A stretch of 64,000 nt of DNA from Cycas panzhihuaensis. Its lineage: Eukaryota; Plantae; Cycadophyta. A model generated the notes under the pieces. It searched no databases, was not told the origin of the DNA, and saw only the letters and a program-made list of their open reading frames with translations. Numbering within the stretch: the stretch's first letter is position 1; each line of letters begins with the position of its first letter. The stretch lies in the NCBI GenBank assembly GCA_023213395.1, contig CM041465.1, positions 162,261,741-162,325,740 of the forward strand, given 5' to 3'. Positions 1-50,800 of this stretch are shown here, piece by piece. Position numbers and translations under genes: made by a program.

Positions 1-81
1 ACTTTTGCTGTCTTGTTTTTTGTGCATACTTTGTGTGATTGGAACCTTGGTGGAAGCTGGCTTGAAAGCCACTTCTCTTCG
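1..81 (+). repeat. 3' end of the 5' LTR of Copia A
   Basis: tttgtgcatactttgtgtgattggaaccttggtggaagctggcttgaaagccacttctcttcg aligns with the end of the 3' LTR (...aaaagccacttcccttca, 6789). Confidence 0.9.
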
Positions 82-83
82 CT

Positions 84-95
84 TGGTATTAGAAC
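84..95 (+). promoter_or_regulatory. Primer-binding site (tRNA-iMet type, degenerate)
   Basis: TGGTATTAGAAC vs canonical TGGTATCAGAGC, 2 nt after the LTR end. Confidence 0.8.
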
Positions 96-119
96 AAGGT
101 TGTAACCTTCATTGCAGGC

Positions 120-530
120 CTACAATTTAAGCCTTTCCATGTATGCCAGTCTTGTATCTTTATTTGTCTTATTGACTTTGTTCCATGTAAGGCAATTTAT
201 CGTTATCTAAAAGTCTATTCCACAAATCAATCACCATCCTATAAATTTCATGATCTGTTTGTGTGTGAATCTTTTTTAACCTAGCACGTTGCTCAACATA
301 GAAGAAGTTGTAACAATTTCTTGTTGATTGGGGACCATTTGGATCTCTCTTATGTATTTGTTTCTTCTTTTTAGCGACTTGCACCTCAAACCCAAGTAGC
401 CATTATCAAATTTACAATTAATTGCTCCTATCATAATCTACCCAATAGATGCACCGGGATCCACTCCAAACAATTGACTTGGATCAATTCTCTTTTTCCT
501 TCTCTTTATACTGTGCTCATAGATCTCCTA
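120..530 (-). pseudogene. Captured fragment of a plant ARID-HMG (HMGB9/10/11/15-like) gene: linker motif plus HMG box
   Basis: ORF 169-384 KRDPNGPQSTRNCYNFFYVEQRARLKKIH...EIYRMVIDLWNRLLDNDKLPY resembles RDPxHPKPNRSGYNFFFAEQHARLK...REISRMIGELWNKL. It continues DK*RYKT..AYMERLKL. Upstream KRRKKRIDPSQLFGVDPGASIG*IMIGAINCKFDNGYL resembles the GVIDGKFxxGYL linker motif. Confidence 0.8.
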
Positions 531-1880
531 GGAATTGAATTATGTGAGTGGGAAACACTAACACCCACCTTGTGGTGAGAGTACATTCACCATTTAAGTT
601 CTAGAATATCATATGTTTCAAAGATAGATGGGTTTGAAGCATTTATAGGGGCTATATGGAAATATCCAGTATTGCCTATAGGCTTCTCAAATGCAGCAGG
701 AAGTTGATTAGTGATTTCATTTTCCATGGACTTCATAGTCGGATGGGGAGCAAGCAATGGACCAGCAGGGGTGCAAGTTGTCCTTAAGCTCTCGTTAGAT
801 CTATGTCCTCCAAGCTATCCTATTCCACCGCAACAGAGCCTGCAATAATTGAGGCAACAAATTCCTCCAACCAACATTGCACCACATTTTTCACATCTCC
901 ATGCCCATTTGACAACCCAATTATAGGCATAAATAAGGGAGGCTTAACTGCATCTTATCATCCAAAAAGGATTCAAGCTCATTTAGTTCCCACGTAGTAC
1001 GAGATAGAGTGTGATTTGGCCAAAACTATAGAGATTTAGAGATTTTTCCTATTGGACTAACACACAGATCATTCAATGGAGGCTGGAGAATGAGCTGACT
1101 TGACGACTGTCTTCAAGTTTATATGCAGATTGGACAATAATTATTGAATTCCCAATCTGATCTTTATGCATTGATCTCGATCATTTGCAGGGTCGGCTGG
1201 TAATCATCTGCAAATTTCGAATCACTCTGGCCTTTTGCAAAAGCATTTGCAATAAACACATGACTTTCATGATTTCATGGTGATCAATAAGATTATTAGA
1301 GGCACAAAAAATTCTGGGCGATTGTTGAAGACAGTTGTTCGATCTTCAGTTAGAGGGGAAGTTGCAAAGATCGATTGATTGATTCAGTTGTAGAGAGAAA
1401 CTTGGACGACTTTCCATAGTTTCACTTGCTTGCCATTCTCTGTGCAATTGATGAAACCTATCAATGTGACCATTCATTGTGATCCTCATTGAGTCTAGAC
1501 CTCAGATATAGTGCCAGATTACAATTCTAGAGCTTTGTTGAAGAGAACTTCTTGCCTGTATCCTATTTTCATTGCTCTTTTTTTTAAACCTGTTGTTAAT
1601 TTTTTTTTTCTATAGTTTATAAAACCATAGGTTATATAATTTAGAATATTCATATAATATTCCCTTTTTAATATTAGCCTCCATGCTAAAGTTTCATTTT
1701 TTAATATTTTTTAATCATTTTTAGCCCATTTTAAGTCATTTTGAACCCCTTTTTTGATTTGTTTTAGACAATTTTTCAAATTTTCTACAGTTATTTTTAG
1801 TTTTTTATTATATTTCTCTCTAAAAATATAGAAAATTATAAATTTTAATATAAAAACTTGAAAGATTAAGAAAGACGAAA

Positions 1881-2363
1881 TCCTAAGTGAACCACCCTCA
1901 TTACCAGTCTTGCAAGGGAAACAGTTAGGACCCTTGAAGGTACCACTCCTGCACATGCTATTGTACTTTCTTGAACTCTACGGACCATAGGGGAGGCAAT
2001 AGATATTAGGTGTATTGAGTGGCAGACTGAGGTGTTTATCTGAAAACCTTGGAGTTTGAAAACTAGGCTAGACTCGAAGAGGGTGAGTTCTTTGGTTGTA
2101 AGTGTGCCCTTAGACGAGGATTTGTCGTTTAGGCCACAAATCTGACACAAATGGGTCAATAATGTCGAGGGGGACGATAGAGTCTTCAGTAGTGCCCACA
2201 TGCCTTCGAGTATATAGAATCCCAAAGTTGCCACTTGTGAGTAGGTACACCATCAGACATAATCGTCTCAACTACCAGGTGATATTAGGCATGGAGACAC
2301 TTAGACTATAGCCACTAGATTAGCAAACCTGTCTAGGTAGACAGGACATATATCTTAGACAAA
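1881..2363 (+). ncRNA. Conserved structured leader RNA immediately upstream of Copia gag (copy A; IRES or packaging candidate)
   Basis: Colinear sequence blocks are shared with 9180-9688. Pseudoknot 1881-1889/1922-1930 plus 1913-1918/1931-1936; long helix 2009-2025/2228-2251; several hairpins. Confidence 0.65.
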
Positions 2364-5300
2364 ATGGCACTTCAAATAGTCGCAACTAACACAATTAAAT
2401 TATCAAGCAGTGATCATTTCTTGGCTTGGAAGAAACAAGTCAAGAACATTCTGATAATAAACAAATTCTAGGCTTATGTTTCTAGTAAAATTTCCATGGC
2501 TAAAGACACCCTAGATCCTAATGATTCCAATGTTGTCATTCCTATTGATCTTGATGTTTTAGCCTGCTTTAAAAATTTTGATGAAATTGACTTTTCTTTC
2601 TTACACCTATCCTGCGAAGATAATGTTAACCAAAACATTGAACTTGCCTCCACTTCTGCTAAAGCTTGGGACATAATTTGTGCACTGTATGAAAGGAAGG
2701 ACAATGTGAGAGCTATCATGCTCAAAGTTCAACTCAATACCTTTTGTAGGATCAATAGTAGCCCACCTGACATAGATCAAATCAATGAAGAACCAATTGA
2801 GTGTTATGGGACAACCACCTGATGATAATGATCTTATATCTTGTATAGTCAATGTTTTGCCAGTTGGATATAATTCCCTTATATTCAACCTATCTCATAT
2901 TGATTGTCTTGCCACACTTGATTTCAACACCTTTGAAGGTCTTCTACTTCAAGAGGAATGCATATTGAACGGATTGGGAAATTCAGGTGCTTCCTCTTCA
3001 ACTCTAGCCTTTGCAGCATATCATAGAGGGAGACAACAATATCCATCCTTAATCAACAATTTAGTTCAATGAATTTGAACCAACATGCATATCAACAATG
3101 TCAACAATGGCCTCAATATCCTACTCAAGTTGTTTCTCACTACTGTGGAAAACCCGGTCACATTGTAGATGATTGTAGGAAAAAAAAAGTTGATCTACAA
3201 TAGCAACAACACTAGAATCGCCCTACCACTCGAGGCAATTAGAATCGTCTACATGGTAATTATCAAGGACCAAGGAGACAAAACCAAAATGACTATCAAG
3301 GACCAAGGATACAAAACCAAAATACCCCTTGGGGCAATCAATAGAATAGAAATCACAATCAGAGAGGAAATTAGAATCAAGGTGGCCAGATGGTCGATTC
3401 ACAAAACCTTTTCTTTGTTGCATCAACTGCACATCATTCTAACAAATCTTGGTTGATAGATTCTGGAGCCTCTCATCATATGACAAGTTCCAAAGATTTA
3501 CTTATAGATACAAGGCCAATATAAGACCAATCAGTTACATTTGGAGATGATGTCATTTTAGAGGTTTCCAAGATTGACAATGCTCTTATATATTTGAAGA
3601 ATTCTGACATTAGACATCACCTTAATAATGTCTTCTATGTCCCTAACATGACATGCAATCTATTATCAATTATCCAAATAAATAAACAAAACTTTAATAT
3701 TTTGTTTAGTCACCTTGGAAAATGTTTGATTAGAGATTTAAATGGTAATTTGATTGCCTCTAAATATGAAGACCAAGGCTTATATAAGCTTGATATAATC
3801 TCAAGACCTATGTTCTTGCAAAATGATATTGGCTCTTGTAGTGACACAACTTCCACTTCTTATACTTCTGCTTCCACTTCAAATACTAATGAACAATCTG
3901 CTTCAAAGGCACTTGTTTCTTAGAGACTACCAAAAGACTAATTGTGGCATTGAGTTGGGATCTGGAAAGCCAATCAAAATCCTTTGCTGTGATAATGGAG
4001 GTGAATACACTTATAGAGAATTCACCCAGTTTTACAAGGATAATGGTATTAAACGATAGTTTTCTGCCCCTTACACATCTTAGCAAAATGAAGTTGTTGA
4101 GCATATGAATTGGACCTTGGTTAGCAAAGGCAAAGCCATGCTTGCCACAAAAAATATGGGACTTCAATTTAGGGTTGAAGCCCTTAACACGACCGCCTGT
4201 CTCACAAATCGAAGTCCAACCAAGGTTGTTTTGAATATTACACCCGAGGAGGCCTTGCTAGGTTAAAAACCCACAGTTTCACATTTGCGCACCTTCGGTT
4301 GTACAACATATATGCTTATACCAAAAGAACAAAGAAAGAAGATGGATGACAAAAGTAGGAAATGTATTTTCATTGGCTACCAGTCGGGTTGCAAAGCCTA
4401 CAAACTTTATGATCTTGCCACTAAGCTAATGTATACATCTCAGATTGTCAACTCTTTAGAAGAGAACCTAGACTTGGACTTGACTCAGCTTTTATTTTTT
4501 GATGATCAAGTTGCAGTAATTTCTACTTTGCCTCCTGCTATAGAGAATGTTCCTGCAATTCAATTGCCTCCATCAACAAAATATACACTTGGTACTTCAT
4601 TTGTGCCTCCTACCTCTACTTCAATGATTCCTTCAAAAGATGTTCAAGAGGTCACTTCAAAGCAACTCCCTAAATGGTACTTGTAGATAATCTCTTCTAC
4701 TCTATCACCTCCATAACAAAATAAGAGGCAACCCAAATATAGGTCATCCACTAACTTTGCCTTAATAGCAGAAGTGTTATAAGCTCCTGAACCTACCACT
4801 TTTGAAGAAGTTGTTACAGATCAAAAGTGGCAAGCAACCATGAATGAGGAGATGGATTCCATTTTGTAAAACGACACTCGGGAGTTGGTTGAGTTTCCTG
4901 ATGGAAAGAAATCAATTGATTGCAAATGGATTTATAAAACAAAATTTCATGTAGATGGCTCCATTCAACATGACAAAGCACGATTGGTTGCCAAAGGTTT
5001 CAAATAAATTGAGGGCATCGGTTATGACGATACGTTTGCCCCTATTGCGAACATGACCATTGCCAGGCTTGTTTTGGCTTAGTAGCTCAATTTAATTGGC
5101 CTGTCTTTCAAATGGATGTGAAAAACACCTGCTTGAATGGTGACTTACAAGAAGAAGTGTACCTAAATCAACCTCCTAGCCATGTTGTTCATGGAAAAGA
5201 ACATCTTGTTTGCAAGTTGAAAAACACTCTTTGTGGTCTTAAGCAATCACCTCGCGCTTAGTATGCAAAGACAGATGAGTACTTTTAAAAGCATGGATTG

Positions 5301-6330
5301 TACGCTCATCCTCAGATCCAAATTTGTACATCAAAATTCAAGATAACTTGATCACTCTGGTTGTAGCATATGTTGATTATTTGCTAATAATAGGTAATGA
5401 TGCAAAGTGGATTTCATACCTCCAAGGAGAATTGTATAACAACTTTGAGATGACTGACCTTGGGTTGTTTCATTACTTTCTTGGCATAGAAGTTTGGCAG
5501 TAGCAAGGCCACATTTTTCTTTCTCAGTCTAAATATGCAAGAGAGATCCTTCAAAAGCTTAGAATGGAGGAATGTAAGCTATCACCAACTCCTATGGAGA
5601 CTGGACTAAAGTTGGATATTGAAGAGCATAGTAAAACCGGCGATCCCACTTTGTATAGGTAGCTTATGGGGAAATTAATTTACCTCACACATACTTGACC
5701 TGATATTTCATATGTTGTTAGGATCTGCTTTAGGTTTATGACACAACCCAAGATTTCACACTGGAAAGCAGTTATGAGAATCCTAAGATATATTCATAAT
5801 TCATTTCAATTTGGACTTAATCATTGCCAAGTGGACAATCCTTCTTTGCCAGACTACACAAATGCTAATTGGGTTGGTTACAAAAATAGCCATAGATCAA
5901 CCTCAAGCTATTGCTTTAACCTGGGTTTTGCCTCTATTTTTGGAGTTGTAAAAAGCAACCAAATGTCACTTAATCCTCCATTGAAATAAAGTACAAAGCT
6001 ATTGTCAGTGTAGCTATAAAGGCTATCTAGCTTAGAAAGATTCTTGAAGAGCTTGGTATTGATTAGACACAAGCTACTACTCTTTTTTGTGACAAGCAGA
6101 GTGTTCTCAAATTGACCAAGAATCCTATGTTCTATGCGAGAACAAAACATATCAAGGTTTACCATCACTTTATGAGGGAGCAGGTTCTGGATGGTAAGAT
6201 TGATTTGGTTTACAAGTTGACCGATGAACAGATTGTTGATATCTTCACGAAAGCACTTCATCGTGACAAATTAGAATGGTTTTGGCATGGTCTTAGTATC
6301 AGAATTAATAAACTCATCATTAAGGGAGGG
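2364..6330 (+). pseudogene. gag-pol: Copia A gag-pol, with stops, frameshifts and an internal deletion near 3950
   Basis: MALQIVATNTIKLSSSDHFLAWKKQVKNIL start; knuckle (S)HYCGKPGHIVDDC; protease WLIDSGASHHM; integrase DNGGEY; KMDDKSRKCIFIGY; RT QMDVK and YVDY; RNase H ARTKHIKVYHHFMRE. Confidence 0.93.
3261..3326 (+). repeat. 33-bp tandem duplication in the gag C-terminus
   Basis: tatcaaggaccaaggagacaaaaccaaaatgac followed by tatcaaggaccaaggatacaaaaccaaaatacc. Confidence 0.9.
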
Positions 6331-6789
6331 TGATAGAAGAATTAATGTTGAATTCATTAATTCGCCTTAGCCTTTTTTAAATGTATTGTACATTTGTAAT
6401 TTAAAGTTGTGTTAGTAAAGTTAGTACATTGTTAAGGGTAATTTTGTCATGTTAGTGGTTAGTTACAACTTGAGGTTGTGAGCTTAAGTACATGGGGTCA
6501 TATTTGCTCACACCTCATTGTAACACACATGTAAGTTGATCATACAAGGTCCCAAATGTCACCTTGCATGATCAGCTCTTCATATTCCTTTGCCTCTCTC
6601 ATAATTGTTAATATTTTGTATATACAAGGCATAACTCCATGTAATATAATATGTGTGATGAATGAAGGTTATAATGTTGGATTTGGAGGATTGGGGAATT
6701 TAACCTCACTTTTTTTTGTCTTATTTTTTGTGCATACTTTGTGTGATTGGAGCCTTGGTGGAAGCTAGCCTAAAAGCCACTTCCCTTCA
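6331..6789 (+). repeat. 3' LTR of Copia A
   Basis: Starts with TGATAG directly after PPT AGGGAGGG, ends CCTTCA, and matches 1-81. Confidence 0.9.
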
Positions 6790-7658: not shown

Positions 7659-8061
7659 TGTTAAAACATAATGTTTAATGTATATATGGTGTACACATGC
7701 ACTTCCCACCATTCACCTACTTCAAGATATGTAAGATGCATACATATCCATGCTATCTCACTATTGGATGATGTAAAGGTTCATTGTATGTGATAGGCTA
7801 CTCATGAGGTGATTATCACTATATATTTATACTCTCACCACTTGAGAACTTGAGAAAGGAGAGGGGAGAAAGATGTAATTCTAATGATCATAAGTGGAGT
7901 CCTAACTCCACCTTCTCCCGTGTTTTTTTCCACATTGAGTTTTCTACGTATAAATCTTGCTGTCTATCTTATGGTGATGATTATGTTTGATGATGTTTAC
8001 TTTACATGTTTGATATTTTATACTCATGAATTAATATTATTGCATCTTCATACTTTTAACA
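7659..8061 (+). repeat. 5' LTR of Copia B
   Basis: TGTTAAAA...TTTTAACA terminal inverted repeat, followed directly by TGGTATCAGAGCC. Confidence 0.85.
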
Positions 8062-8108
8062 TGGTATCAGAGCCATGCATGCATATTTTTTAACATGGTA
8101 TCAAAGCT
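8062..8108 (+). promoter_or_regulatory. tRNA-iMet PBS, tandemly duplicated together with the LTR end
   Basis: TTTTAACA-TGGTATCAGAGCC at 8054-8074 and TTTTAACA-TGGTATCAAAGC at 8088-8107. Confidence 0.85.
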
Positions 8109-9179
8109 TGTATGTGCCTGATTTAAAAGTATTTTGGTGATTTTAGTTGATTTTGCTCTATTCCTTTACATTCTTTGGCAAATCTAAGTTTTGTACAACG
8201 TTGAAGCTAAGAGCAATTGGTTCCAGTCATTTACAACCTCTTATAATAGTTTGTTCATTTGTTTGCACTCATTTAGGGTTTGGATCTACGTTTTCTGAAG
8301 AAAACGAATGAAAAATCACGTTTTTCATTCGCTACAACCCTAATATTGATTAGTCCTTCTTGTTGGAGCTTCATTTATCCTTTTGGCAGCCCTAAACCCA
8401 TTCTTACTTATTGTTAGAAAATATTTGAGATGGTTTAAGGTTTTATTTTGCTTAGTTTTGCTTATTTAGGCTCCCATAGCCCCCTAGACTTCTATAGCTC
8501 CATTCTCCTCAATACAAGCTTCTTTTTCAAAAATTCCATTTCCATTGAGTGCCTCTCATCATTGCATCCCTTTCTCTAAAATTTTGTCTCATTCCGAGGC
8601 CATTTGATCTTCCTTTAGGGCTCCACACTTTTGCTTTGGTTTGTCGTTTTTGCATGCAGGTCACACAAGCCTCAAGAAAGGTACCTGCGCTATTTCTACG
8701 ATATCCTTGTAACCGTTTATTCGATTTGTGAACCGTCTAAAGCATTGGAAAGCTGATTCACAACTCTACAGTTTAGAATCAAATTTAGCTAGATTTGGAG
8801 TTGATTTGAAGGAGATATTAACTGCTCAAGTTGACCCTTATGTTTGAGCTATTTGAGCCTTACGTTTCAAGATTTGAAGGCATTTTTCAGTTTTCTTGAG
8901 GTTCTTTTGCTAGATTAGGTTGTGCCTTATCATTTTTAGCTGTTCAATTCTAATTTTTAAGGCTAATTAAGTGCATTATGATGTTTCATATGTAGGTGTT
9001 GCTTTTAGAAGGTTGAAAATGTTAACTCTCAAAGCTTGGTCCATCAAGAGCATTCTAAACCTACCCTTATCATTTCAATTTGTTCTATTTCCTTTTCATT
9101 TCATTTATTGATTTAAAAGGAACCTCTTGTGTGTAAGAAATTCACTCAAAAATTAAATTTTCACATTAAAAAATATAAC

Positions 9180-9688
9180 TCCCGAATTGAACCCCCATTT
9201 CCAGCAGTGCAAGGGGAACAATTAGGACCCCTTAAGTTACCACCACGCACACGCCCTTGGCCTACTCATATTGGATGAGGAATATCATTGGCTATAAGGT
9301 GTAATAGGTGGCAGGCTAAGAAGAGATCTTATCTTTTGGAGTTTGGAGACTAGGCTAGACCCAGGGGAGTGAGTGTCTTGGTTGGTAAGTTGTCACCGCT
9401 AGATCTGTTATTCGGCATAAGACCGATGCAGGTGGGGAAACAAATCAGGGGGGTCTTAGGACCTTTTTAGCACCCAACGTATTGAGGTATATCAAGCCTT
9501 TGAGCTCATGTACTAGTATATCAGGTCCCTGGTTTGCCACTTGTGGGCAGGCACCATTAGACAGGATAACAACCAAGAGATTTCTTGGAGACCCTTTGCC
9601 TTAAAATTCCATATTAGAAGCCACTTAGGTAGATTAGTACCTCATCACACAAAAATTTAAAGACATCAAACATGGAAACCTTTCAAAC
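9180..9688 (+). ncRNA. Conserved structured leader RNA immediately upstream of Copia gag (copy B)
   Basis: Homologous to 1881-2363. Pseudoknot 9180-9189/9219-9227 plus 9211-9216/9228-9233; helix 9306-9316/9532-9542. Confidence 0.65.
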
Positions 9689-9709
9689 ATGGCATTACAA
9701 ATACTGTTT
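9689..9709 (+). pseudogene. gag: First codons of Copia B gag (MALQILF), truncated at a junction
   Basis: ATGGCATTACAAATA = MALQI, the same N-terminus as Copia A gag (MALQIV), at the equivalent position after the leader. Confidence 0.65.
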
Positions 9710-11999
9710 CCCCATCAACAATCACCTTCGGAAATGTTTCTCCCAATACTGTAATCGTCACCGTAGGATCCACATCAAATGATGGCATAACTTTCTTCAA
9801 ACTTTTTGTAAACCCTTGCTGTAGTATACCTCCCTTGATCCAATCGATCACTTGGTGTAACGGGATGGTTAGTTGTAATTGTTTTACCAAATTCTCTATT
9901 AACAACAACATCCTTGGGATATCTTCCACGGGCAATCCTTTAAACAATTCCTCGATTTACACCATTTGAGGACGATTCTCTGGTTCCTCCAATATCTTTT
10001 CTTTTTCCTTCTGCTTGTTTTTCCTTACATACACCTTTGTAACTTCTGGTTTTCCCATTGGCAACATAGCTTCTTCCCAAGCTAGTTCCTCCACTACTTG
10101 CTTAGCTTGTCGAAATCTATTAATTTTTGTTTGTGGGTTTGGATACCCATCTTCCTCAACTTCTATTTGCTTCCTTTGCAATTTTATATTCTTATTTTCA
10201 GGTATGATCATCATCAAATTGGTGCCTTTTGCTTTTCCCTTACAATCTTCCGTTTTGTGCTCACTTGGTCCACAATTGCTGCACACAAACGGTTTCTGCT
10301 CATACTCCTGTTTAATTGGACATTCTGATTTCCAATGTCCAAACTGTAAACATATTAAACATCTCCCCATTGGCTGTCTCTTTTTGGATGACTCTGGTGT
10401 ACTCCTTGTCGTATACCCATTCTGGGGTGGGTTGCCTCCTCTTCCCCTACCTTGTCCTCTGTATGCGCTTCCTCGTGGATTATAAAAGCAACTTTTAGTT
10501 GTATGGTTATCCACATCACATATGTGGCACTATTTCTTTGATTGGTGTAACACATTATTTTTGGGATTAATGGCACATTCTTTCGTCGTATGTGAACTCT
10601 CTTCGCAAATATGACACCATTTTTCCACATGATCCTTCTTTTTCTTTGTTGTTTCTTCTTCCCTACTGTTTCTCGTTTTTAGCCTTGCTACCTCTTTTCT
10701 TAAGGCTTCAACTTCTGATTCCTCTTCTGATACTCCTACTTGAAAGAAGGGTCGATTATGTTGATTTTGTTTTATTTCCCTAATTTCTACCTGCAACCTC
10801 AATAGGAGAGGGTCGTGTCCTCTCGCCTGGGCATCCATTTCCATTTCGAAGTCAAATGCCAAATCCTGAGCATTCTTAAAAGACTTCAATGGGTGTGCTT
10901 GTATCATAGACCTTAGTTTCTCTTTTAGCCCTTTGACGAAATAATTCTTCATATTGTGATCCGTCACTATTTCGTTTATCATGTTCGTTGCAATAAATTT
11001 CATTCTACTGATATAGGTCAGTACTGATTCACCAGGTCTTTGCTTTATCTCCCTCAAAGCAATTTCCACTGCCTCATTGCTTCTAAATTTCTGAAATCTT
11101 TCCTCAAAAGATTTCTTGATCTTAGCCCATGATTCATTCTTGTCTATTTCTTTGTACCATGCCAATCGTACTCCCCTCAATGTACATGCAAATCTCGCTT
11201 TGATCTCATCTTCATTCGTAATCTTCTTCACGTCAATCAAATTCTGAAATAGGTATGCATGCTCTATCTCGCAAGTGTCATTGAAGATCAGCTTCCCAAA
11301 ATCTCTATAGTCGTCCATCCTTGGCGACTGCACTAGCGTTCCACTTGCTAGAGATTCCCTGCTTTGTTTTTCCTCCAAAGATTTTGTCTCTTCTTCTTCA
11401 CCCTTTCCTTCTGGGGGTGTGTTTGGAGTACTTCCAGCGATATTATCTTTTCCAAATAATGGATTCTGAAAAGTTGTTTTCAGGTGTATAGGTTTCAACA
11501 CACGTGGCACTTGTATCGTTACAAATGATTGATTAGACCCTTTGTCTGTCAAATCCTCAAAAAGCTGCCTTGTTAATTTGTTTATCCAATATGCCGAGGG
11601 ACCTTCCTCTACCTTCTTTTCGTTATCACTTAGGTCCTTCGAGGTGTGCTCCTTTGGTATACTCTCCTTTTCCCTTAGGGTATCCTTATGTTCCTTACTT
11701 ATTTTTGGTTTTTGTTCCCATTCTGGGCTAAACAAATCATCCTTAATTGGGGCTGGTGTTAATAGCATTTGTTCGCCCTTATTCTCCTCATTCTCCTCCT
11801 GAGATGTCTGGGCTCCACTTGCCTCAGCTTCTTCAACGGACTGTCCTCTAGTGTCGTTGTTTTGCGAACTTAATCTCCTCGCCCTCCTTAATTTTGACTC
11901 CTTTGCCCAACGTAATGCTCTTTGTCTACTGGTTTCTTTCCCCTTTGGTGAAGTATCCTTTTGAAGCTCCTCCGTCCTGGAAGGCCTTTTTGGTGGCAT
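9710..11999 (-). pseudogene. gag: Gypsy Gag (Retrotrans_gag core, four CCHC knuckles) plus N-terminus of an aspartic protease (VIVDG); one frame with two in-frame stops
   Basis: ORFs 10530-11999, 9957-10514 and 9666-9947 are all in one frame. Motifs: LREIKQRPGESVLTYISRM; CHICEESSHTTKEC, CHICDVDNHTTKSC, CLICLQFGHWKSEC, CSNCGPSEHKTEDC. Confidence 0.88.
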
Positions 12000-12121
12000 T
12001 GGAAGGTCCCCTGGCTGCCGGAGGCTTAGTTCTGACCGCCATCACGACCTTGATCGGGGTCCTCGCCCTTTACACATTCCTCTTTTTGAGACTCACAGGC
12101 CTGTCCTCCTCAATGGACGTG

Positions 12122-12133
12122 AGCAATGAACCA
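12122..12133 (-). promoter_or_regulatory. Non-Met PBS (TGGTTCATTGCT, resembles the tRNA-Glu complement)
   Basis: 1 nt after the LTR end TCAACA on minus. A near-identical motif lies at 43456-43468. Confidence 0.55.
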
Positions 12134-12134
12134 A

Positions 12135-12930
12135 TGTTGACTTGGGAGATTATCTTATTACACTTATGAGATAAACACACTTGTCAATTGCAGTTATAGT
12201 CTAGTTAAGGATACAACAACATATCATCACAAAAGTACACATGCTCCTTTTTCACTTCATACCACATAACATAATCATGCAATAACACGGAATTCAGTAC
12301 ACATTCAGCCATATAACACATACAATATCAATTCCACGTAACTCTTCTTTCCATTAAGTAATAAGTTTGATTACACAGAGGGCTGGAATGCATTCCTGTG
12401 CATTCCAGCAGCATACACACTTCTGTTACATGCGTACCCAGGTGGTACTCGTCATTATACACGGCTCTAATTGGCTGTCATACGTACTGGCATGCGCACC
12501 ATTGTGTACCCTGAATATTCAGCTCTCACCCTAACCGAATGGTCCTTGCAAGCGTCCTTAAATGTGCCTCTTTGTACCTTTTTGGCTGAAGGGTTATGAC
12601 TGTCTGTCATAACCGTACCCCTCCAATCAAGCGTACCTTTTCATTAATCATTGGTTACACCTTAACCAATGCCTTAATCCTGTCTGTACATCCGTACGTA
12701 CGTCTGGCAACTCCCCAGGCTCCCACTGGTCCCATACTGTCATGCGTACCGCTTCTGTCTATTTTCATTCTGCCGATGGTACGTATCTGTGTTGCGTACC
12801 CGTTCTAGGTACGCACCTATCATACATACCCAGAATGCTAGTTTTTTCCACTGTTTTGCCTCGTGCGTACCTCTGTACGGTCCGTACCTGCACATCCAGG
12901 GTTATCCAGCCTACCTCTGGTCTTCTAACA
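12135..12930 (-). repeat. 5' LTR of Gypsy G1
   Basis: TG...CA ends with a short terminal inverted repeat; adjacent to the PBS; Copia RT resumes right after 12930. Confidence 0.8.
12434..12887. promoter_or_regulatory. Homotypic cluster of 17 GTAC motifs (13 in CGTAC context) in the G1 LTR
   Basis: GTAC at 12434, 12445, 12484, 12506, 12574, 12615, 12633, 12686, 12694, 12698, 12746, 12779, 12796, 12809, 12867, 12875 and 12884. Confidence 0.6.
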
Positions 12931-14096
12931 GCCATATGATTCAAAATATACCCCAACAAGGGGCACTTGGTTTGTCGCTTGAAAAAGGCTTTGTATGGCT
13001 TGAAACAAGCTCCTCAGGCATGGTACTCCAAAATTGATGATTATTTTTTGAGACATGGTTTTCATCGATCCACATCAGACCCTAACTTATACATCAAAGT
13101 TGAGAAAGACCATGCTATCTTTATTGTCTTGTATGTTGATGGCTTAGTTATCATTGGTAATGACACTAAGATGATACACATTCTTTAGGATGATTTGAAG
13201 AGAACTTTTGAGATGATAGATCTTGGACTACTACATTAGTTTCTAGGTTTTGAGGTATGGCAACAGCTTGGCTCTATCTTCATATCCCAAGCAAAATATT
13301 CTTGGGACATTTTGCAGTGGTTCAGGATGTATGACTACAAACCAGCACCAACGCCTATGGAGAATGGAACAAAGCTTACTCTTAATGAGGAAGCTGAACT
13401 TGCAGATTCCACTCTTTACTGACAGTTGATTGGTAGCCTCATTTATCTCACCAACACTCGACTGGATATTTCATTTGTAGTTGGGATTTGCTCTAGATAT
13501 ATGTCTCAACCCAATCAGAAACATTGGAATGCAGCAAAATGCATACTTAAATACATCAAAGAAACATTGCAGCATGGATTCAGTATGCACATAATGAGGA
13601 CTTCATCTTAAAAGGATTCTTAGATTCTGATTGGGCAAGTTGTTAGGATAGCCGGAGATCCACCTCAAGTTACTGTTTTACTCTTGGTTCAGGAGTTGTT
13701 TCGTGGAGTTTCAAGAAGCAACCCAATGTTACCTTGTCCTCCACTGAAGCAGAATACAAAGTTGTTGTTAGCGCAGCTTGTGAGACTATATGGCTACGGC
13801 AGATTCTTGAAGAGCTTAGACTTGAGCAAAATCACCCCACTAGGATATATTGTGACAATCAAAGTGTACTCAAGTTGGCCAAGAATCTAGTCATTCATGC
13901 ACGGACCAAACACATCGAGGTTCATCATCACTTCATCAGAGAGCATGTGCAGAATGGTGAGATCAACCTCTAGTGCAAACCCTCTGAGAGGAGCGGGGCA
14001 ATAGATATCTTTACCAAGCCTCTTGTTAGAGAAAAATTTGTAAAATTCAGAGATGGTCTTGGCGTCCGACTTAACATTGTAAACAGTAAGGGTGGG
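12931..14096 (+). pseudogene. pol: Copia D RT (C-terminal part) and RNase H, ending in a PPT
   Basis: LVCRLKKALYGLKQAPQAWY, LYVDG, SSTEAEY, CDNQS, ARTKHIEVHHHFIRE; PPT AAGGGTGGG. Confidence 0.92.
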
Positions 14097-14644
14097 TGTT
14101 AAACCTAATGTTTACATGTTAAGTATGTACTTTATTCTTTTATTCTTTCATTCATTATTTTGTACTTTATGGGGTGACTAATCACTTAAGTGATAAAGTG
14201 CACACCCACTTTCATCCTAGTGACATAACATTGTAACTAAAGGGTCAAATAGACCCTCATGCATCTTTGCTCACTTGAGAGCCTAATGGACACATGTCCT
14301 TCATGCATGACATGCAAGCCATGCATTGCATGTACCTTGGATGTTTGCCACTTGTCAAATATCCAACAGTGTTAGGTAACCTCAATTACTCTATATATTG
14401 AGACCTCTCTTCATGTCTCACATGTAAAGTTGAAGTGTAATGTTATGCTACCAATTTGCTAATCAATTGGTATTCTTTGGAGTAAGACTAATTCCTCCTC
14501 ACACTTTGGTATCATCTTGCTCCCTTGATCTTGGTCTTGTTTATCTTAGTTTTGTTCTTATGTTTTTTAGAACTGGAGGAAAACTATCTTCATGATCTTG
14601 TTTTTATAGGTCTTAGGCATTCTAATCCTTTGGCCTTCTCAACA
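14097..14644 (+). repeat. 3' LTR of Copia D
   Basis: TGTTAA after the PPT through ...CTCAACA. Coding sequence of another Copia resumes at 14645. Confidence 0.8.
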
Positions 14645-16373
14645 GAGTCCCCTTGCATATATGAACCAGGAGAATGCTCCCACTCAAAAGATGAAGTGAC
14701 CACAAATAGATCCAAAGACCACCTATGGCATCAACGCCTAGGTCATTTGAATATGCAAAGCTTGAACCTCATGTCTAGGCTCAAAATGGTTTATGACCTA
14801 CCCAAAATCAAGAGATATCAGAACATATGTGAGGCCTGCCTAAAGGGAAAGCAATCAAGAGAAAAATTCCCTTCCAAGAATGCATAGAGAGCTTCATGAC
14901 CATTAGAGTTGGTACATTTTGACATTTGTGGCCCTATGTCCACCCAATCTCTTAATGGTAGCTGGTACTTCATTACCTTCATAGGTGACTTCTTATAAAA
15001 AGTATGGGTCTACTTCTTGAGAAACAAATATCAAGCCCTGGATAGATTCAAAGAGTTCAAAGTTACTGCTGAAAACGAAAGTGGGATGAGAATCAAGACC
15101 CTTAGATCTGATAATGGTGGTGAATATATTTCAAATCAGTTCAATAATGTTTGCAAATAACATGGCATCTTGCATTAATTTTTTGCTCATCACACAACCC
15201 AGCAGAACGGTGTAGTTGAAATGATGAATCAGACTTTGATCAATAAAGGAAAAGCCATGCTTAGTGCAGCTAACCTTGCCACTAGATTTTGGGTTGATGC
15301 CATTGCCACAACTGCTTACCTAACCAACATAAGTTCCACAGTTGCAGTTAGAAACATTACTCTCAAAAAGCTTGGTCAGGTCAGAAACCATCTGTAGCTC
15401 ACTTACGGATCTTTGGATGCACGACATACAAACATGTCCCAAAGGATAATAGGAAGAAGCTTGATGATAAGAGCCTTAAGTGCATCTTCCTTGGCTATGT
15501 ACTTGGTTGCAAAGCCTATAAAGTCTTTGACACAGTTGGTAACCAAGCTTACATAACTCAGGACGTAATCTTTGCTGAAGAACCACAGAAACTGACACCT
15601 CCTCCACATTAGATTGTAGTAGAAGATGAAGTTCATGTGTCACAAGTGACCCTTGGACAAACTTTGGAGCCACCTGTACCAACTTACTCCTATTCTCCTG
15701 GTCCATCATCAATTCCTACAGCTTCTTTGTCATCCACTCAAGTGAGCACAAATTTGCCTCCCATATCAATTGATGACCTTTGGGTAGAAGCCACCAGCTT
15801 TCAGCCACCTCCTAAGTTGGTACAACAACTTTTAAAGGATGCTCCTCTTCCTCCCATAACTATAAAGAGGTCTTCCAAGATGAGACACTCTGTAAATTTT
15901 GCCCTCATGGCACGTGTCCTTGAAGATCCTGAGCCTTTCGTGTTTGAGGAGGAATCAAAGACCAAATGTGGAAAGCAACTATGGATGAAGGGATGAATTC
16001 TATCTTAAAAAATGACACTTGGGGGTTGACTGAATTGCCACTTGGGAAGAAAGCAATTGACTATAGATGGCTATATAAGACAAAGTTTCATGTAGATGGC
16101 ACCATAGAGTATTACAAAGCTCGACTTGTTGCAAGAGGTTTCAAACAACAGGAAGGAATTGACTATGATGAGACCTTTGCACTGGTTGCCAACATTGAGA
16201 TCCACCATCACTTCATCTGTGGGCATATCCAAAACAGAGAAGTTGATCTCATCTACCATCCTACTGAAGACTAGGTTGCAAACATCTTCACTAAAGCACT
16301 TGGTAAACTAAACTTTGAATGGTTTAGATTTGACCTTGGCATCCAAAGAAATGAAGTTGTTATTAAGGGAGGG
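14645..16373 (+). pseudogene. pol: Copia C pol fragment (GAG-pre-integrase, integrase, RT N-terminus fused by deletion to RNase H end)
   Basis: LWHQRLGHLN...CEACLKGKQ, DICGP, LRSDNGGEY, KARLVARGFKQQEGIDYDETFA|NIEIHHHFI. Confidence 0.9.
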
Positions 16374-16729
16374 TGTTAAAACTTTCTAATATCTCTTTCA
16401 TTTCTTCATACCTTTGTATGCTAACGTTTATATTGTACAAAAGGACCCTTTTATGTAATTAAATCACATTGGATAGTGAGGTCAGGTCCAACTCTTGTGC
16501 CGCTAAGTTGGCTTATCCCAATGCATTGTAATCTTGGCTGACGGCTATAAATATTGCCCCGCACCTTTGTACTTTATGTTGGATTGTGATTAATGCGGAA
16601 GCTCTACTCGAGAGAGAGCCTATGGTGTGGCAAATTCACCTGTACCATTGCATGCTCATATGTTTTGCTTATTTGCTTGATTTGTTGAATATTTGTCAAT
16701 ATTTTGCTCATTATACTTGAATCAGGGTA
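16374..16729 (+). repeat. 3' LTR of Copia C, truncated about 28 nt before its end
   Basis: Follows PPT AAGGGAGGG. It is the reverse complement of 19625-19980. Confidence 0.88.
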
Positions 16730-46035: not shown

Positions 46036-47830
46036 TGTAAGGTCCCAAAAATGTACAAAAATGAAGCCGAAGACAAACATTGATTGACTAATAGGCCAAT
46101 AGACCCAACATTGATTAACTAATAGACTAATAGACCCAATAGCCAATGGACAATGTCATTGAATCAAAAGTGGACTAGTTGAATTACTTCATCTAGTAAC
46201 ACCATGATACCAATGGGCATTCTGCAAGGCATACTATAGCAACTACAAGGACCATTTTGTTGTGGCATCCAAACATTATATCTCCATGTTCACTTTGAAC
46301 ATCACAAGTGTAGGTAATACAATGAAAACTATAGGGAGCATTTCATAGGGCATTTAAGTAATAGGTCAACTTCAATACAAAGGGCACACCAATAGTAGGT
46401 TGGCATAGTATACCAATGGTAGGTAGGCTTGGCATTCCTATAGAAGGTCAAATGTGAGATTATGAGCATTCCAACAGAAGGTTGGATGCAGCATATTATG
46501 TATCCAAGCAGGCATAACACAAGGCACACAAGCATATGAAGGGTTGAAATATGAAATATTTATGGTCACCATAAATAGTTAGTGTCTATAATTATAACTA
46601 TTTGGAGTTGTGAAAATTAATGTTGCATTCCTACATCCCAAGACGAATACTAATTTCAAATGGAATTTAAAAAAGATTAAAATAGTTAAGATAAGGTTGC
46701 ATTCGCATAACCCAAGAAAAATATAGACTTCAAATATAATTAAAAATTATTAAAATAATCAAAGTAAGCCACTATATAAAGGCTTGCTTATTAGACTTTA
46801 GAATCATGAGTTTATTTTGATTTGGAATTTAATCCTTTAGGTACATTTGGGGCCAAAGATGTTTCTACTGTAAGTTTCTATTGTAATTTAAGAATTTCCT
46901 TTCTATTTTAGTTTTGGATTCATCACAAGTGGTATCAGAGCACGATTTTAGCCAATTAGGGTTTTATCAAAATCTACAAATTTGGAGGTATAAATGACTA
47001 AATTTAGAAAAAGCAATGATATATTTGAAATAATCAAATTTGTGCTATAAATTTTGAGTGGTTATACTACAAGCTTTAGTATAGAGTTGCAAGAGTTATA
47101 AAGGTTTCAATCATGGCCTACTGTTTATCACCATTTATAAGGTAGGAAATCTACTACAATAGCTTCCAATGACTATAAGTTTTGCCACAGGTATTTGATT
47201 GATCTTTTTCTTTTTTCTTTTTTTCTTTTTTTTTCGAATAGGTGTGTCTTGAAATATACTTTCTGATAAAAGTGGTTTCAACTCAATTGGATGTTAAAAT
47301 CAAAAGTTATCAAGATTTTAGTAAGAGGTATTATTGTAGTCCCCAAAAATCTTAAATTTTGATCAACTTCAAAAGGTTATTACATGAGCTACAGGTCTCC
47401 AAATAACCTCAAATTAGATTCATTGAATTTTTTTCTTTTTTGCTATCTTTCCATAAAAAAGTATTCCATTCAATTTTTATGGTTATAATATAATTTATTT
47501 TAAGGTTGGTGATGGAAATTTTATTTTCTCTCCTATGTAATTTTTCCCACTTGTAGCAAGCTTTGAGCCACTTGATGTTTAAGAAAATTAAGTTTGTTGA
47601 CTTTCATCCAAGATTTGAGAAATTTTAAACATTCATTCCTCAAAAACCTTATTTGGTCATACCATTTTCGGGTTATTTTTTGAAGAATCCAAAAGGAATT
47701 TTCAAAAAAAATTTACACATTTAAGAAGAGCATAACCACACCTTTCTTTTAAGGCCATTTTTTTCTGATTTTGTATATTTGTACTTTTCTATACAAACCC
47801 CATACAATTGTACAGTCATATGGCCTGCTC
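46036..47830 (+). mobile_element. Gypsy 5' LTR (~46036-46927), iMet PBS (46930-46941) and G2-like leader
   Basis: TGTAAGG...TCACA followed by TGGTATCAGAGC. 47730-47825 aligns with the reverse complement of ~28000-28080 (G2 leader). Confidence 0.7.
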
Positions 47831-47887: not shown

Positions 47888-50800
47888 ATGGCTTCAATGT
47901 TTTCTCTTGGGGATTCTAATAAACTTACAAGGCAAAACTATAGCATTTGGAAGTTGAAAATGCAAGGGCTTTTAATGGCCAAAAATGCATGGGCTATAGT
48001 CACAGGGAAGGAAGCCAAACCCATTGACATAGTGGATGTAATTAGTTGGGAAGAGAAGAATAGAATTGCACTAGTTGTAATAATGTTATCTATGGGAGAC
48101 TCCTTGCTAAGCCACATAGGTATAGCTATCTCTTCCCCAGAGGCTTGGAGAATTTTAGTCTCACTTCATCGTTAAAAAAATAAAGCCTAAATAATATCTC
48201 TTCGAGAGCAATTATACAAGGTTCATCTCAAAGAAGGAGAAAGTATCTCAAATTTCATAACTAAAATTGTTGAGATTAAGAATAGCTTAGTCTTTGTAGG
48301 AGAGACTATAGCTGACTTTGAGCTTGTTTGCTTGACAATCAATAAATTGCCAAAATCATTTGATAGTATGGTAAACCACTTACCATAGGAGGACATACAA
48401 CTAACATGTCTTTTAAGACCTTGACAGGGCACATGCTGCAGCAAGAACAAAGAAATAAAAGGTATGAAGAGGAAATTGACATTAAAGAAGCCTTTCTCTC
48501 AAAAGTAAATTTGGAAAATAGGGGCCGATTTAGAAGCACAATGAGAGGAAGAAGCAAATCTGCTAGAGATTCGACAAGGACTGCAACTAAAAATCGAAAT
48601 AGATCCACTTGGTCTCCTGAAGGATGAAGAAGAACCACATGGATGTCAGAAGGAAGATGAAGATCTTTATTTCAAGAATTTAGATTATGTTTCCACTGTG
48701 GAAGGCATGAACATCTTGCTAGTGATTATAGAGTGTATAATTTGCCAAATTGTTACTATCGTGGGAGAACAGGACACTTCCAATCATTGTCCACAAATAT
48801 AGGTTGACATTCAAAGAGGGAAGAGAGTTGAAGGAAATTACAACAATGAACAAGTAGAAGATGAAGATGAAGAAATTACTTTTATCACTACCTTGGCTAT
48901 GCATACTTGCAAAAATGAAGATTAGTACATGAGCTTTGGAGCATCTAATCATATGGCAAGGAGAAGAGATTGGTTTGAAATGTTGAGACCATACTTCATC
49001 AACAAAATTGTTGAACTTGGTATTACTTTCCTTTACAAATTAAAAGGAAAGGGACAATTGCTATCTCAATCAATGATAAAATTAAAAAAATTAGAGAAGT
49101 CTTTTATGTTACTAGCCTAAAAAGGAACCTTTTATCTATGTCCCAGTTAAGAAAAAAGGGACTTAGGGTTATCTTTAATGAAGATGGAAGATGTCCCATC
49201 TATGACATGAAAAATAATGACATTGTAATTGCAAAAAGAGTTGAAATTGACAATCTCTATAAATTGGTTTCCACTCCTATTCTGCTTAATCCATTTGTAA
49301 AATCCCTTGTTAAAAACTCCATTAATGAAATTTGGCATTCAAAAAATGGACACATTGCAAACAAATGATTAGAATTATTAAAAATTTCTAATATGGTGAA
49401 TGGTCTTCCTGAGATGTTTTTTGATTTATTTATATGCAAAAGTTGTATGACTGGCAAATAGCACTGAGCTCCTTTCTAAAAGAGCACATGGAGAGCACAT
49501 AGAAGGTTAAAATTGGTCCATACTGACTTATGTGGACCAATAACACCAAATTCAATTAATGGTGCAAGGTATTTTTTTACCTTCATTGATGATTTTTCCA
49601 GGAGAACCTGGGTGTATTTTCTTTTTAGCAAATCAGAAGTTTTAGATTACTTCAAAGAATTTAAAGCATAAGTTAAATTGGAAAGAGAATGCAAAATTAA
49701 AATTCTTCAATCTAATATAGGAGGAGAATACATATCAAACGACTTTTGTTACTTCTACAAGATGAATGGGATACAAAAACATGACACTGCTCCATATATG
49801 CCACAGTCAAATGGAATAGCCGAATGAATGAACAGGACAACAATGGGAATGGCTCGAAGCATGATAAGTGAAAAAGCAGTAACAAAGGTGTACTAGGATG
49901 AAGCAATCAACACTGCAGTATATCTCATCAATCAAAGTCCTACATAAGCTCTGGACAAGATAACTCCTTAAAAGGCCCGAACTAAAAGAAAACCAAATGT
50001 GAGTCATCTTAAAATCTTAAGTAGTAAAGCTTATGTTCATATTCCTGACAAAAAGGGAACTAAGCTAGATGATAAAAGCATTGAATACATTATGATTGGG
50101 TATAACAACAAATCTAAGGTGTATAGATGCATAGATCCAAAGACAAATAGGATCTATGTTAGTAGAGATGTAACTTTTGATAAACAGACAAATCAAAAGG
50201 ATAAAATAGTACATAGATAGGCTGAAGGAAATACACAAATGAATGTGTCAATTGAAGAAATTTTTAAAGTCACTACAGCAGAAAAAGATACATTAGAAAG
50301 TGAACTTCAGAAAGAAAGTAAGCAAGATCTCTTTGAACAACAACAACAAATCTTATCTGAAGCTAAGCAAAATTTCTCTGAATGAAGCAGTGATGAAGCA
50401 CCAAAAAAAATATCCAAGTGGTACATCAAGACCCTTGAAGAATCAAAAGATAATGTTTTTAAACAAAGAACTAGATCACAAAAACGCCAAAGCTTAATGT
50501 GCTCTTTTGAACCACAAAATCATTCTAAAGCATATGATCATCCAAAATGATAGAAGGCTATGGATGCTGAAATGAATGCCATTAAGAAAAATAAAACCTA
50601 GGAATTGGTTGATGCTCCGAGAGATAAACCCATTGTTGGTTGTAAATGGGTATACAAAATAAAAGTAAAGTCTGACGAGACGGTTGAAAAATATAAGGCA
50701 AGACTGGTAGCAAAAGGTTATATTCAAATAGAAGGAATTGATTAGGAGGAAACCTTTTCACTAGTAGCAAAGTTGATAACTGTGAGAACAATCATAGCCA

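Follow-up and report, generated by a model that had tools for sequence, protein, structure and literature searches.

A conserved non-coding leader block abutting gag in two Ty1/Copia elements of Cycas panzhihuaensis

LTR retrotransposons make up most of many plant genomes, and we know of hardly any cis-acting RNA signals described in them beyond those of BARE. In retroviruses, packaging and dimerisation signals lie in the interval between the PBS and gag, and the packaging regions are structured. IRES activity has also been reported for the retroviral leader (HIV-1, MoMLV), and a single region could therefore serve both packaging and translation. The 5' RNA domain of Ty1 contains palindromic PAL sequences and a long-range pseudoknot. 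Ribosome shunting, a further way of translating an ORF behind a long leader, depends on a short ORF near the 5' end that terminates immediately ahead of a large, stable stem. Among plant elements, the accepted reading of the BARE1 and BARE2 leaders is that they carry conserved dimerisation and packaging signals (PMC3735527; PSI and DIS are also discussed in PMC4350172), and BARE translates capped RNA, with cap-independent translation apparently not used (PMC3735527).

Here we describe a leader block of about 480-510 nt that is shared by two Ty1/Copia elements, A and B, of the cycad Cycas panzhihuaensis. The window, that is, the whole stretch of DNA analysed, comprises 64,000 nt (assembly GCA_023213395.1, contig CM041465.1, positions 162,261,741-162,325,740, forward strand) and is plant DNA dense in LTR retrotransposons; all coordinates below refer to it. 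The block resembles the PSI/DIS region of BARE1 and BARE2 in that both are parts of a plant Ty1/Copia leader, between PBS and gag, which are conserved among elements differing elsewhere, a pattern read in BARE as a Gag packaging signal (PMC3735527, PMC4350172); it differs in its length, in directly abutting the AUG and in that its role in packaging or dimerisation is putative. With the leader (Psi) of HIV-1 and MoMLV, the block shares its position between PBS and gag AUG and a candidate stem-loop with a palindromic, DIS-like loop, although the retroviral structures are proven with covariation, whereas the block folds like its controls and its palindrome is 4 nt rather than 6 nt long. Ty1 of yeast belongs to the same Ty1/Copia superfamily and likewise carries dimerisation and packaging determinants in its 5' RNA, but these signals lie mostly within the gag coding region and a short leader and have no sequence similarity to the block; moreover, unlike the Ty1 pseudoknot, the one proposed for the block is sterically implausible. 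The shunt leaders of CaMV and RTBV are comparable in that they, too, are long and precede the first large ORF of a plant element that uses tRNA-Met to prime reverse transcription (PMC5902531). The block, in contrast, has neither a conserved upstream ORF nor an exceptional stem, and no upstream ATG is aligned in A and B; in these respects it does not fit a ribosome-shunt leader.

We consider it somewhat better than an even chance (roughly 0.55) that the block is a conserved, gag-proximal, cis-acting part of the leader of an abundant plant Ty1/Copia lineage, with packaging and dimerisation as its most likely function. A non-coding block of approximately 500 nt, rich in exact motifs and abutting gag, is a concrete candidate in which packaging, dimerisation or translation signals could be mapped.

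The shared block and its two elements

The elements and the block are represented by the following features.

3 to 95, plus strand: end of the 5' LTR of A and its decayed tRNA-iMet PBS; positions 3-80 of the LTR match 6711-6788 in the 3' LTR at 90%, and the PBS (84-95) has 2 mismatches
121 to 1440, no strand assigned: copy-specific insert in the leader of A, with low contig depth and near-identical contigs, outside the repeat family
1881 to 2363, plus strand: leader block, copy A; non-coding, with its 3' end at the gag AUG, and colinear with 9180-9688
2364 to 3072, plus strand: decayed gag of A, interrupted by a stop (2469-2471) and by a frameshift near 2785-2822; Pfam Retrotran_gag_2
8062 to 8107, plus strand: duplicated PBS of B, exact at 8062-8073, the second at 8096-8107 with 1 mismatch
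9180 to 9688, plus strand: leader block, copy B; aligns with copy A and is the sole other match in the window to an nhmmer profile built from A and B
9689 to 9703, plus strand: remnant of the gag start of B (MALQI), where homology to A breaks off after some 5 codons

The initial annotation had reported two colinear blocks, each ending at an AUG that opens MALQI, in elements whose LTRs and other leader parts do not align, and the alignments bear this out in all respects. The two blocks are colinear homologues with 291 of 463 aligned columns identical (63%) and 92 gap columns (MAFFT L-INS-i), the best BLAST segment, which covers only the core, reaching 67.6% over 219 nt; both finish at ATG GCA YTW CAA ATA, which encodes MALQI. 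A third copy of the block was found in the 64-kb window neither by blastn nor with the A/B nhmmer profile, and every comparison of the block reported here rests on two sequences, both of them decayed. Outside the block, A and B are alignable in pol only; no alignment was found between their LTRs or the remaining parts of their leaders. The pol DNA of the pair is 64-72% identical and the block 63-68%. Judged from these identities, the block has been preserved to much the same degree as pol DNA, whereas the LTRs and the other leader parts diverged past alignment or were replaced by inserts.

Conservation is concentrated in short motifs. Six stretches of 8-12 columns contain no mismatch at all, where 1.4 would be expected (P=0.0014); along the block, local identity is more variable than in any of 5000 column shuffles. 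The motifs quoted in the initial annotation are all present: a hairpin of the CAAGGG/CCCTTG type, GTGGCAG and TTGCCACTT, GTGAG, and AGCCAC followed by TAGATTAG. GAGTTTG and TAGACYC flank a loop containing ACTAGGC in both blocks. Further motifs of the block are ACTAGGCTAGAC and TTGCCACTTGTG, and a TATA-like AGTATAT is conserved approximately 140-170 nt upstream of the gag AUG.

Downstream of the block, the gag translation of A starts with MALQIVATN..KLSSSDHFLAWKK, and Pfam places Retrotran_gag_2 at 2472-2822 (E 4e-6) and at 2785-3072; SH3_retrovirus is also recognised in A. Beyond the gag start of B, pieces of Copia integrase and RT with homology to A occupy 12979-16381, with the Pfam domains gag_pre-integrs and RVT_2. 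Both copies are dead.

Conservation through a shared reading frame, an explanation that the initial annotation had itself named, was checked and does not apply. Each frame of both copies holds 4-16 stops and no frame is shared; tblastx matches between the blocks are short, jump frames and run through stops. As all six frames carry stops and A and B agree on none of them, a coding explanation is ruled out, and the claim of a large non-coding block directly 5' of gag and common to two Copia elements holds. The block is also, as had been supposed, not a described family: Rfam 15 gave nothing at gathering scores for the whole window, and for the two block regions it gave no known IRES, ribozyme, retroviral element or anything else at E up to 10. 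These empty searches rule out a known RNA family or a known self-cleaving ribozyme motif.

Tests for a conserved RNA structure

The initial annotation saw in the block a conserved structured RNA with a pseudoknot, a long-range helix and several hairpins. Folded as single sequences and compared with dinucleotide shuffles, the two copies have no excess stability (z -0.61 for A and -0.34 for B). RNAalifold on the A/B alignment gave -48.5 kcal/mol with an SCI of 0.35; compared with 200 column shuffles, this amounts to z -1.6 (p 0.055). On its reverse strand the block scored z -1.24, and in sliding windows the SCI ranged from 0.08 to 0.44. Four control alignments of pol coding DNA from the same element pair spanned z +0.4 to -2.6 and SCI 0.27-0.47, and the consensus fold of the block lies within this control range. 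The strongest consensus-fold score was that of a pol control (5701-6200 against 13463-13963), with z -2.6 forward and -2.5 reverse. Because such a score arises on coding DNA, the column-shuffle test alone yields seemingly significant values in this material.

Individual helices were assessed by counting pairs; the candidate elements are as follows.

2017 to 2025, plus strand: 5' strand of a candidate long-range helix, whose partner in A is 2228-2236; the corresponding strands of B are 9296-9306 and 9532-9542
2052 to 2075, plus strand (9329-9352 in B): candidate hairpin with a 7-bp stem and a 10-nt loop containing a CUAG palindrome, found in the MFE folds of both copies
2228 to 2236, plus strand: 3' strand of the candidate long-range helix, the TTGCCACTT motif, from the alignment and pair counts

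The six proposed helices comprise 43 pairs. More than half (29) are invariant and hence uninformative for covariation; 3 are kept through a one-sided change and 1 through a double change, 6 are broken in B, 1 is mismatched in A itself and 3 meet gaps. Where a pair had changed, pairing survived at a rate of 0.40; the 240 stems of 6 bp or more that A could form give 0.38, in a comparison of two sequences with low power. The candidate long-range helix consists of 7 invariant pairs and 2 one-sided changes, and both of its strands are themselves conserved motifs, so that the counts speak neither for nor against this pairing. The CAAGGG/CCCTTG helix and the stem with the GTGAG loop can be restored in B by slipping the register by one base, which is suggestive, although such slips also raise the rate at which pairing is kept by chance. 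In the candidate hairpin at 2052-2075, the stem is invariant save for one pair, which is broken in B, and the CUAG, a palindrome of only 4 nt, sits inside the invariant 12-mer ACTAGGCTAGAC.

As drawn, the H-type pseudoknot was rejected. The 3' strand of its stem 1 (1922-1930) abuts the 3' strand of its stem 2 (1931-1936), leaving a loop 3 of 0 nt, and a loop of 0 nt cannot span a 9-bp helix; with no spacer between the 3' strands, both stems cannot form in full together. Local MFE folds of both copies contain stem 1 alone. Two further hairpins, which had been described as kept in position with different sequence, do exist, but whereas the versions in A score z near -2, those in B score -0.6, and there is no sign of selection on them.

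Taken together, folding that equals shuffles, a consensus fold that equals controls and 4 pairs kept against 6 broken through change mean that a conserved structured RNA is not demonstrated, which is not to say that it is absent: beyond the complementarity of invariant motifs, the structural reading is not supported by these two sequences, which give low power.

The repeat family and the length of its leader

DNA contigs from four runs of four related species were placed on positions 1-3600 at 80% likeness, and approximately 11,000-13,000 contigs matched per large run, mostly 80-95% alike. Summed contig depth, which is no copy number and served for coarse contrast alone, was 0.5-25 in most bins of 121-1440 (one run reached 95 in a few of them) and 10^2-10^4 from about 1560 on, across the block and gag. 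Since thousands of contigs that are 80-95% alike lie on block and gag, the block is part of an abundant Copia family, and it travels with gag in many family copies. Beyond this plant group, the block has no detectable sequence relation: exact-pattern scans gave 0 matches in metagenome contigs (two scans), viral contigs and bacterial or archaeal genome contigs. A scan of viral contigs based on gag found no relative either, and among 1.84 billion protein representatives the gag piece has 6 relatives.

The contigs listed within 121-1440 match almost perfectly (3-5 differences over 242-345 nt), and this stretch fits a single-copy locus. It contains an antisense HMG-box fragment (169-384, minus strand; Pfam HMG_box_2 at 22.5 bits with a cut-off of 22.4, and HMG_box at 23.3 bits). 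Given the single-copy depth and this foreign fragment, the 2.3 kb leader is a feature of this copy rather than of the family, for which a leader nearer 0.5-1 kb is probable. The insert of approximately 1.3 kb looks like a captured or inserted piece of a host gene in a dead element. No convincing terminal inverted repeats of a DNA transposon were found inside either leader.

Differences between the family contigs and the window are dominated in all four runs by C>T (150-229 places) and G>A (144-199 places). Such changes are the usual decay of methylated repeats, through deamination of methylated cytosines, and they yield ATG from ACG. These results bear on the proposal that leaders of 1.6-2.3 kb with many upstream AUGs make scanning unlikely. 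Upstream AUGs are indeed present (5 in A and 4 in B), but none are at aligned positions, and most of the leader of A is the copy-specific insert. The insert, the lack of alignment among the upstream ATGs and a decay that creates ATGs together much weaken the argument against scanning, and we infer that leaders of 1.6-2.3 kb belong to these dead copies, at least to A, rather than to the family.

Other copies differ from A in the leader as well. Two of the runs contain a contig that matches 1600-1701 and 1923-2070, with 144 other letters replacing the 221 of 1702-1922. In at least one other copy, then, roughly the first 40 nt of the block have been exchanged or have diverged strongly, and with them the 5' strands of the pseudoknot that had been proposed.

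Proposed function of the block, and neighbouring elements

The block lies between the tRNA-iMet PBS (84-95 in A, 8062 in B) and the gag AUG (2364 and 9689, respectively), in the setting of a Ty1/Copia leader: an LTR end and PBS upstream, Copia gag-pol downstream, non-coding, and shared with gag across family copies. We favour packaging and dimerisation because such signals occupy the same position in retroviruses and in the PSI/DIS of BARE; packaging or dimerisation, which the initial annotation itself offered as an alternative, is also a better prior than an IRES. We propose that the block acts in cis on the full-length RNA, most likely as a packaging and dimerisation region that would be recognised by Gag. 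In this model, the CUAG hairpin (2052-2075 in A, 9329-9352 in B) may provide a dimer contact as a putative dimerisation loop, and the motifs closest to the AUG might set the context for gag translation. Against the packaging reading stands the fact that the block has no structural signal above controls, unlike the structured packaging regions of retroviruses; the shortness of the CUAG palindrome and the stem pair broken in B count against it as well.

Translation control would give the block a different task, as an IRES, or as the structure that a shunting ribosome bypasses together with the site where it lands, for a gag placed behind a long leader. In its favour, the block lies directly 5' of the gag AUG in A and B alike. 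Leaving the insert aside, the leader of the family would probably still measure 0.5-1 kb, and that of a further Copia in the window runs to about 950 nt. IRES activity has been reported for retroviral leaders at this position, and shunting over long structured leaders is used by plant pararetroviruses (PMC5902531). However, the conserved upstream ORF or AUG that a shunt would require is absent, the fold is neither unusually stable nor conserved, Rfam offers no IRES family at E up to 10, the long-leader premise fails in A, and BARE, the only plant Copia studied in this respect, translates capped RNA (PMC3735527), so that we regard translation control as quite improbable. One form of it, a translation-control RNA (an IRES or a shunt-type landing structure) kept across divergent plant Copia families with unrelated LTRs, with a fold conserved too loosely or too differently for a two-sequence comparison, we consider more improbable still; if true, it would be the first translation-control RNA of that kind described for a plant LTR retrotransposon. 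The same motifs could alternatively be read at the DNA level, as protein-binding sites in a regulatory module downstream of the LTR (an internal promoter, an enhancer or a chromatin-targeting element). Discrete motifs of 8-12 nt separated by unalignable spacers with indels are what binding sites would produce, the TATA-like AGTATAT is conserved before the AUG, and the consensus-fold score is nearly independent of strand. We know of no internal leader promoter in any plant Copia, and this want of precedent counts against a DNA module, to which we give a low probability.

The block might also have no function of its own, having decayed less by chance or having been exchanged between lineages by template switching, in which case its conservation would reflect ancestry and low-complexity anchors. 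That two decayed copies were compared, that their identity is modest (63%, with 92 gap columns) and that the structure tests are negative all suit this explanation. The LTRs and upstream leader of the same elements are nevertheless unalignable while the block stands at pol-level identity, and rate heterogeneity within the block is significant; we therefore think an absence of function unlikely. A conserved leader region with a packaging and dimerisation role thus remains our preferred reading. For now the block counts as a common type of feature, the conserved leader of a retroelement, and nothing in the analysis supports the unusual role first proposed.

Several features around the two elements deserve mention. 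In B, the LTR end and PBS are doubled 34 nt apart within 8050-8110, with TGGTATCAGAGC at 8062, TGGTATCAAAGC at 8096 and TTTTAACA before each. Right where the gag of B breaks off, a stretch (9704-11999) with Gypsy gag ORFs on the minus strand begins; the ORFs themselves, of 489 and 185 aa with zinc knuckles, lie at 9957-11999 and match Retrotrans_gag and Ty3_capsid. In between, that Gypsy has neither RT nor integrase, and for this reason the junction resembles a rearrangement or truncation more than a clean nested insertion. For a third Copia element of the window, the exact PBS is at 46930 and the gag AUG at 47888 (MASMFSLGDSNKLTRQNYSIWKLKMQG). The leader of this element, about 950 nt long, is AT-rich and without similarity to the block of A and B. 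Long leaders seem to be common among the Copia elements here, with differing content.
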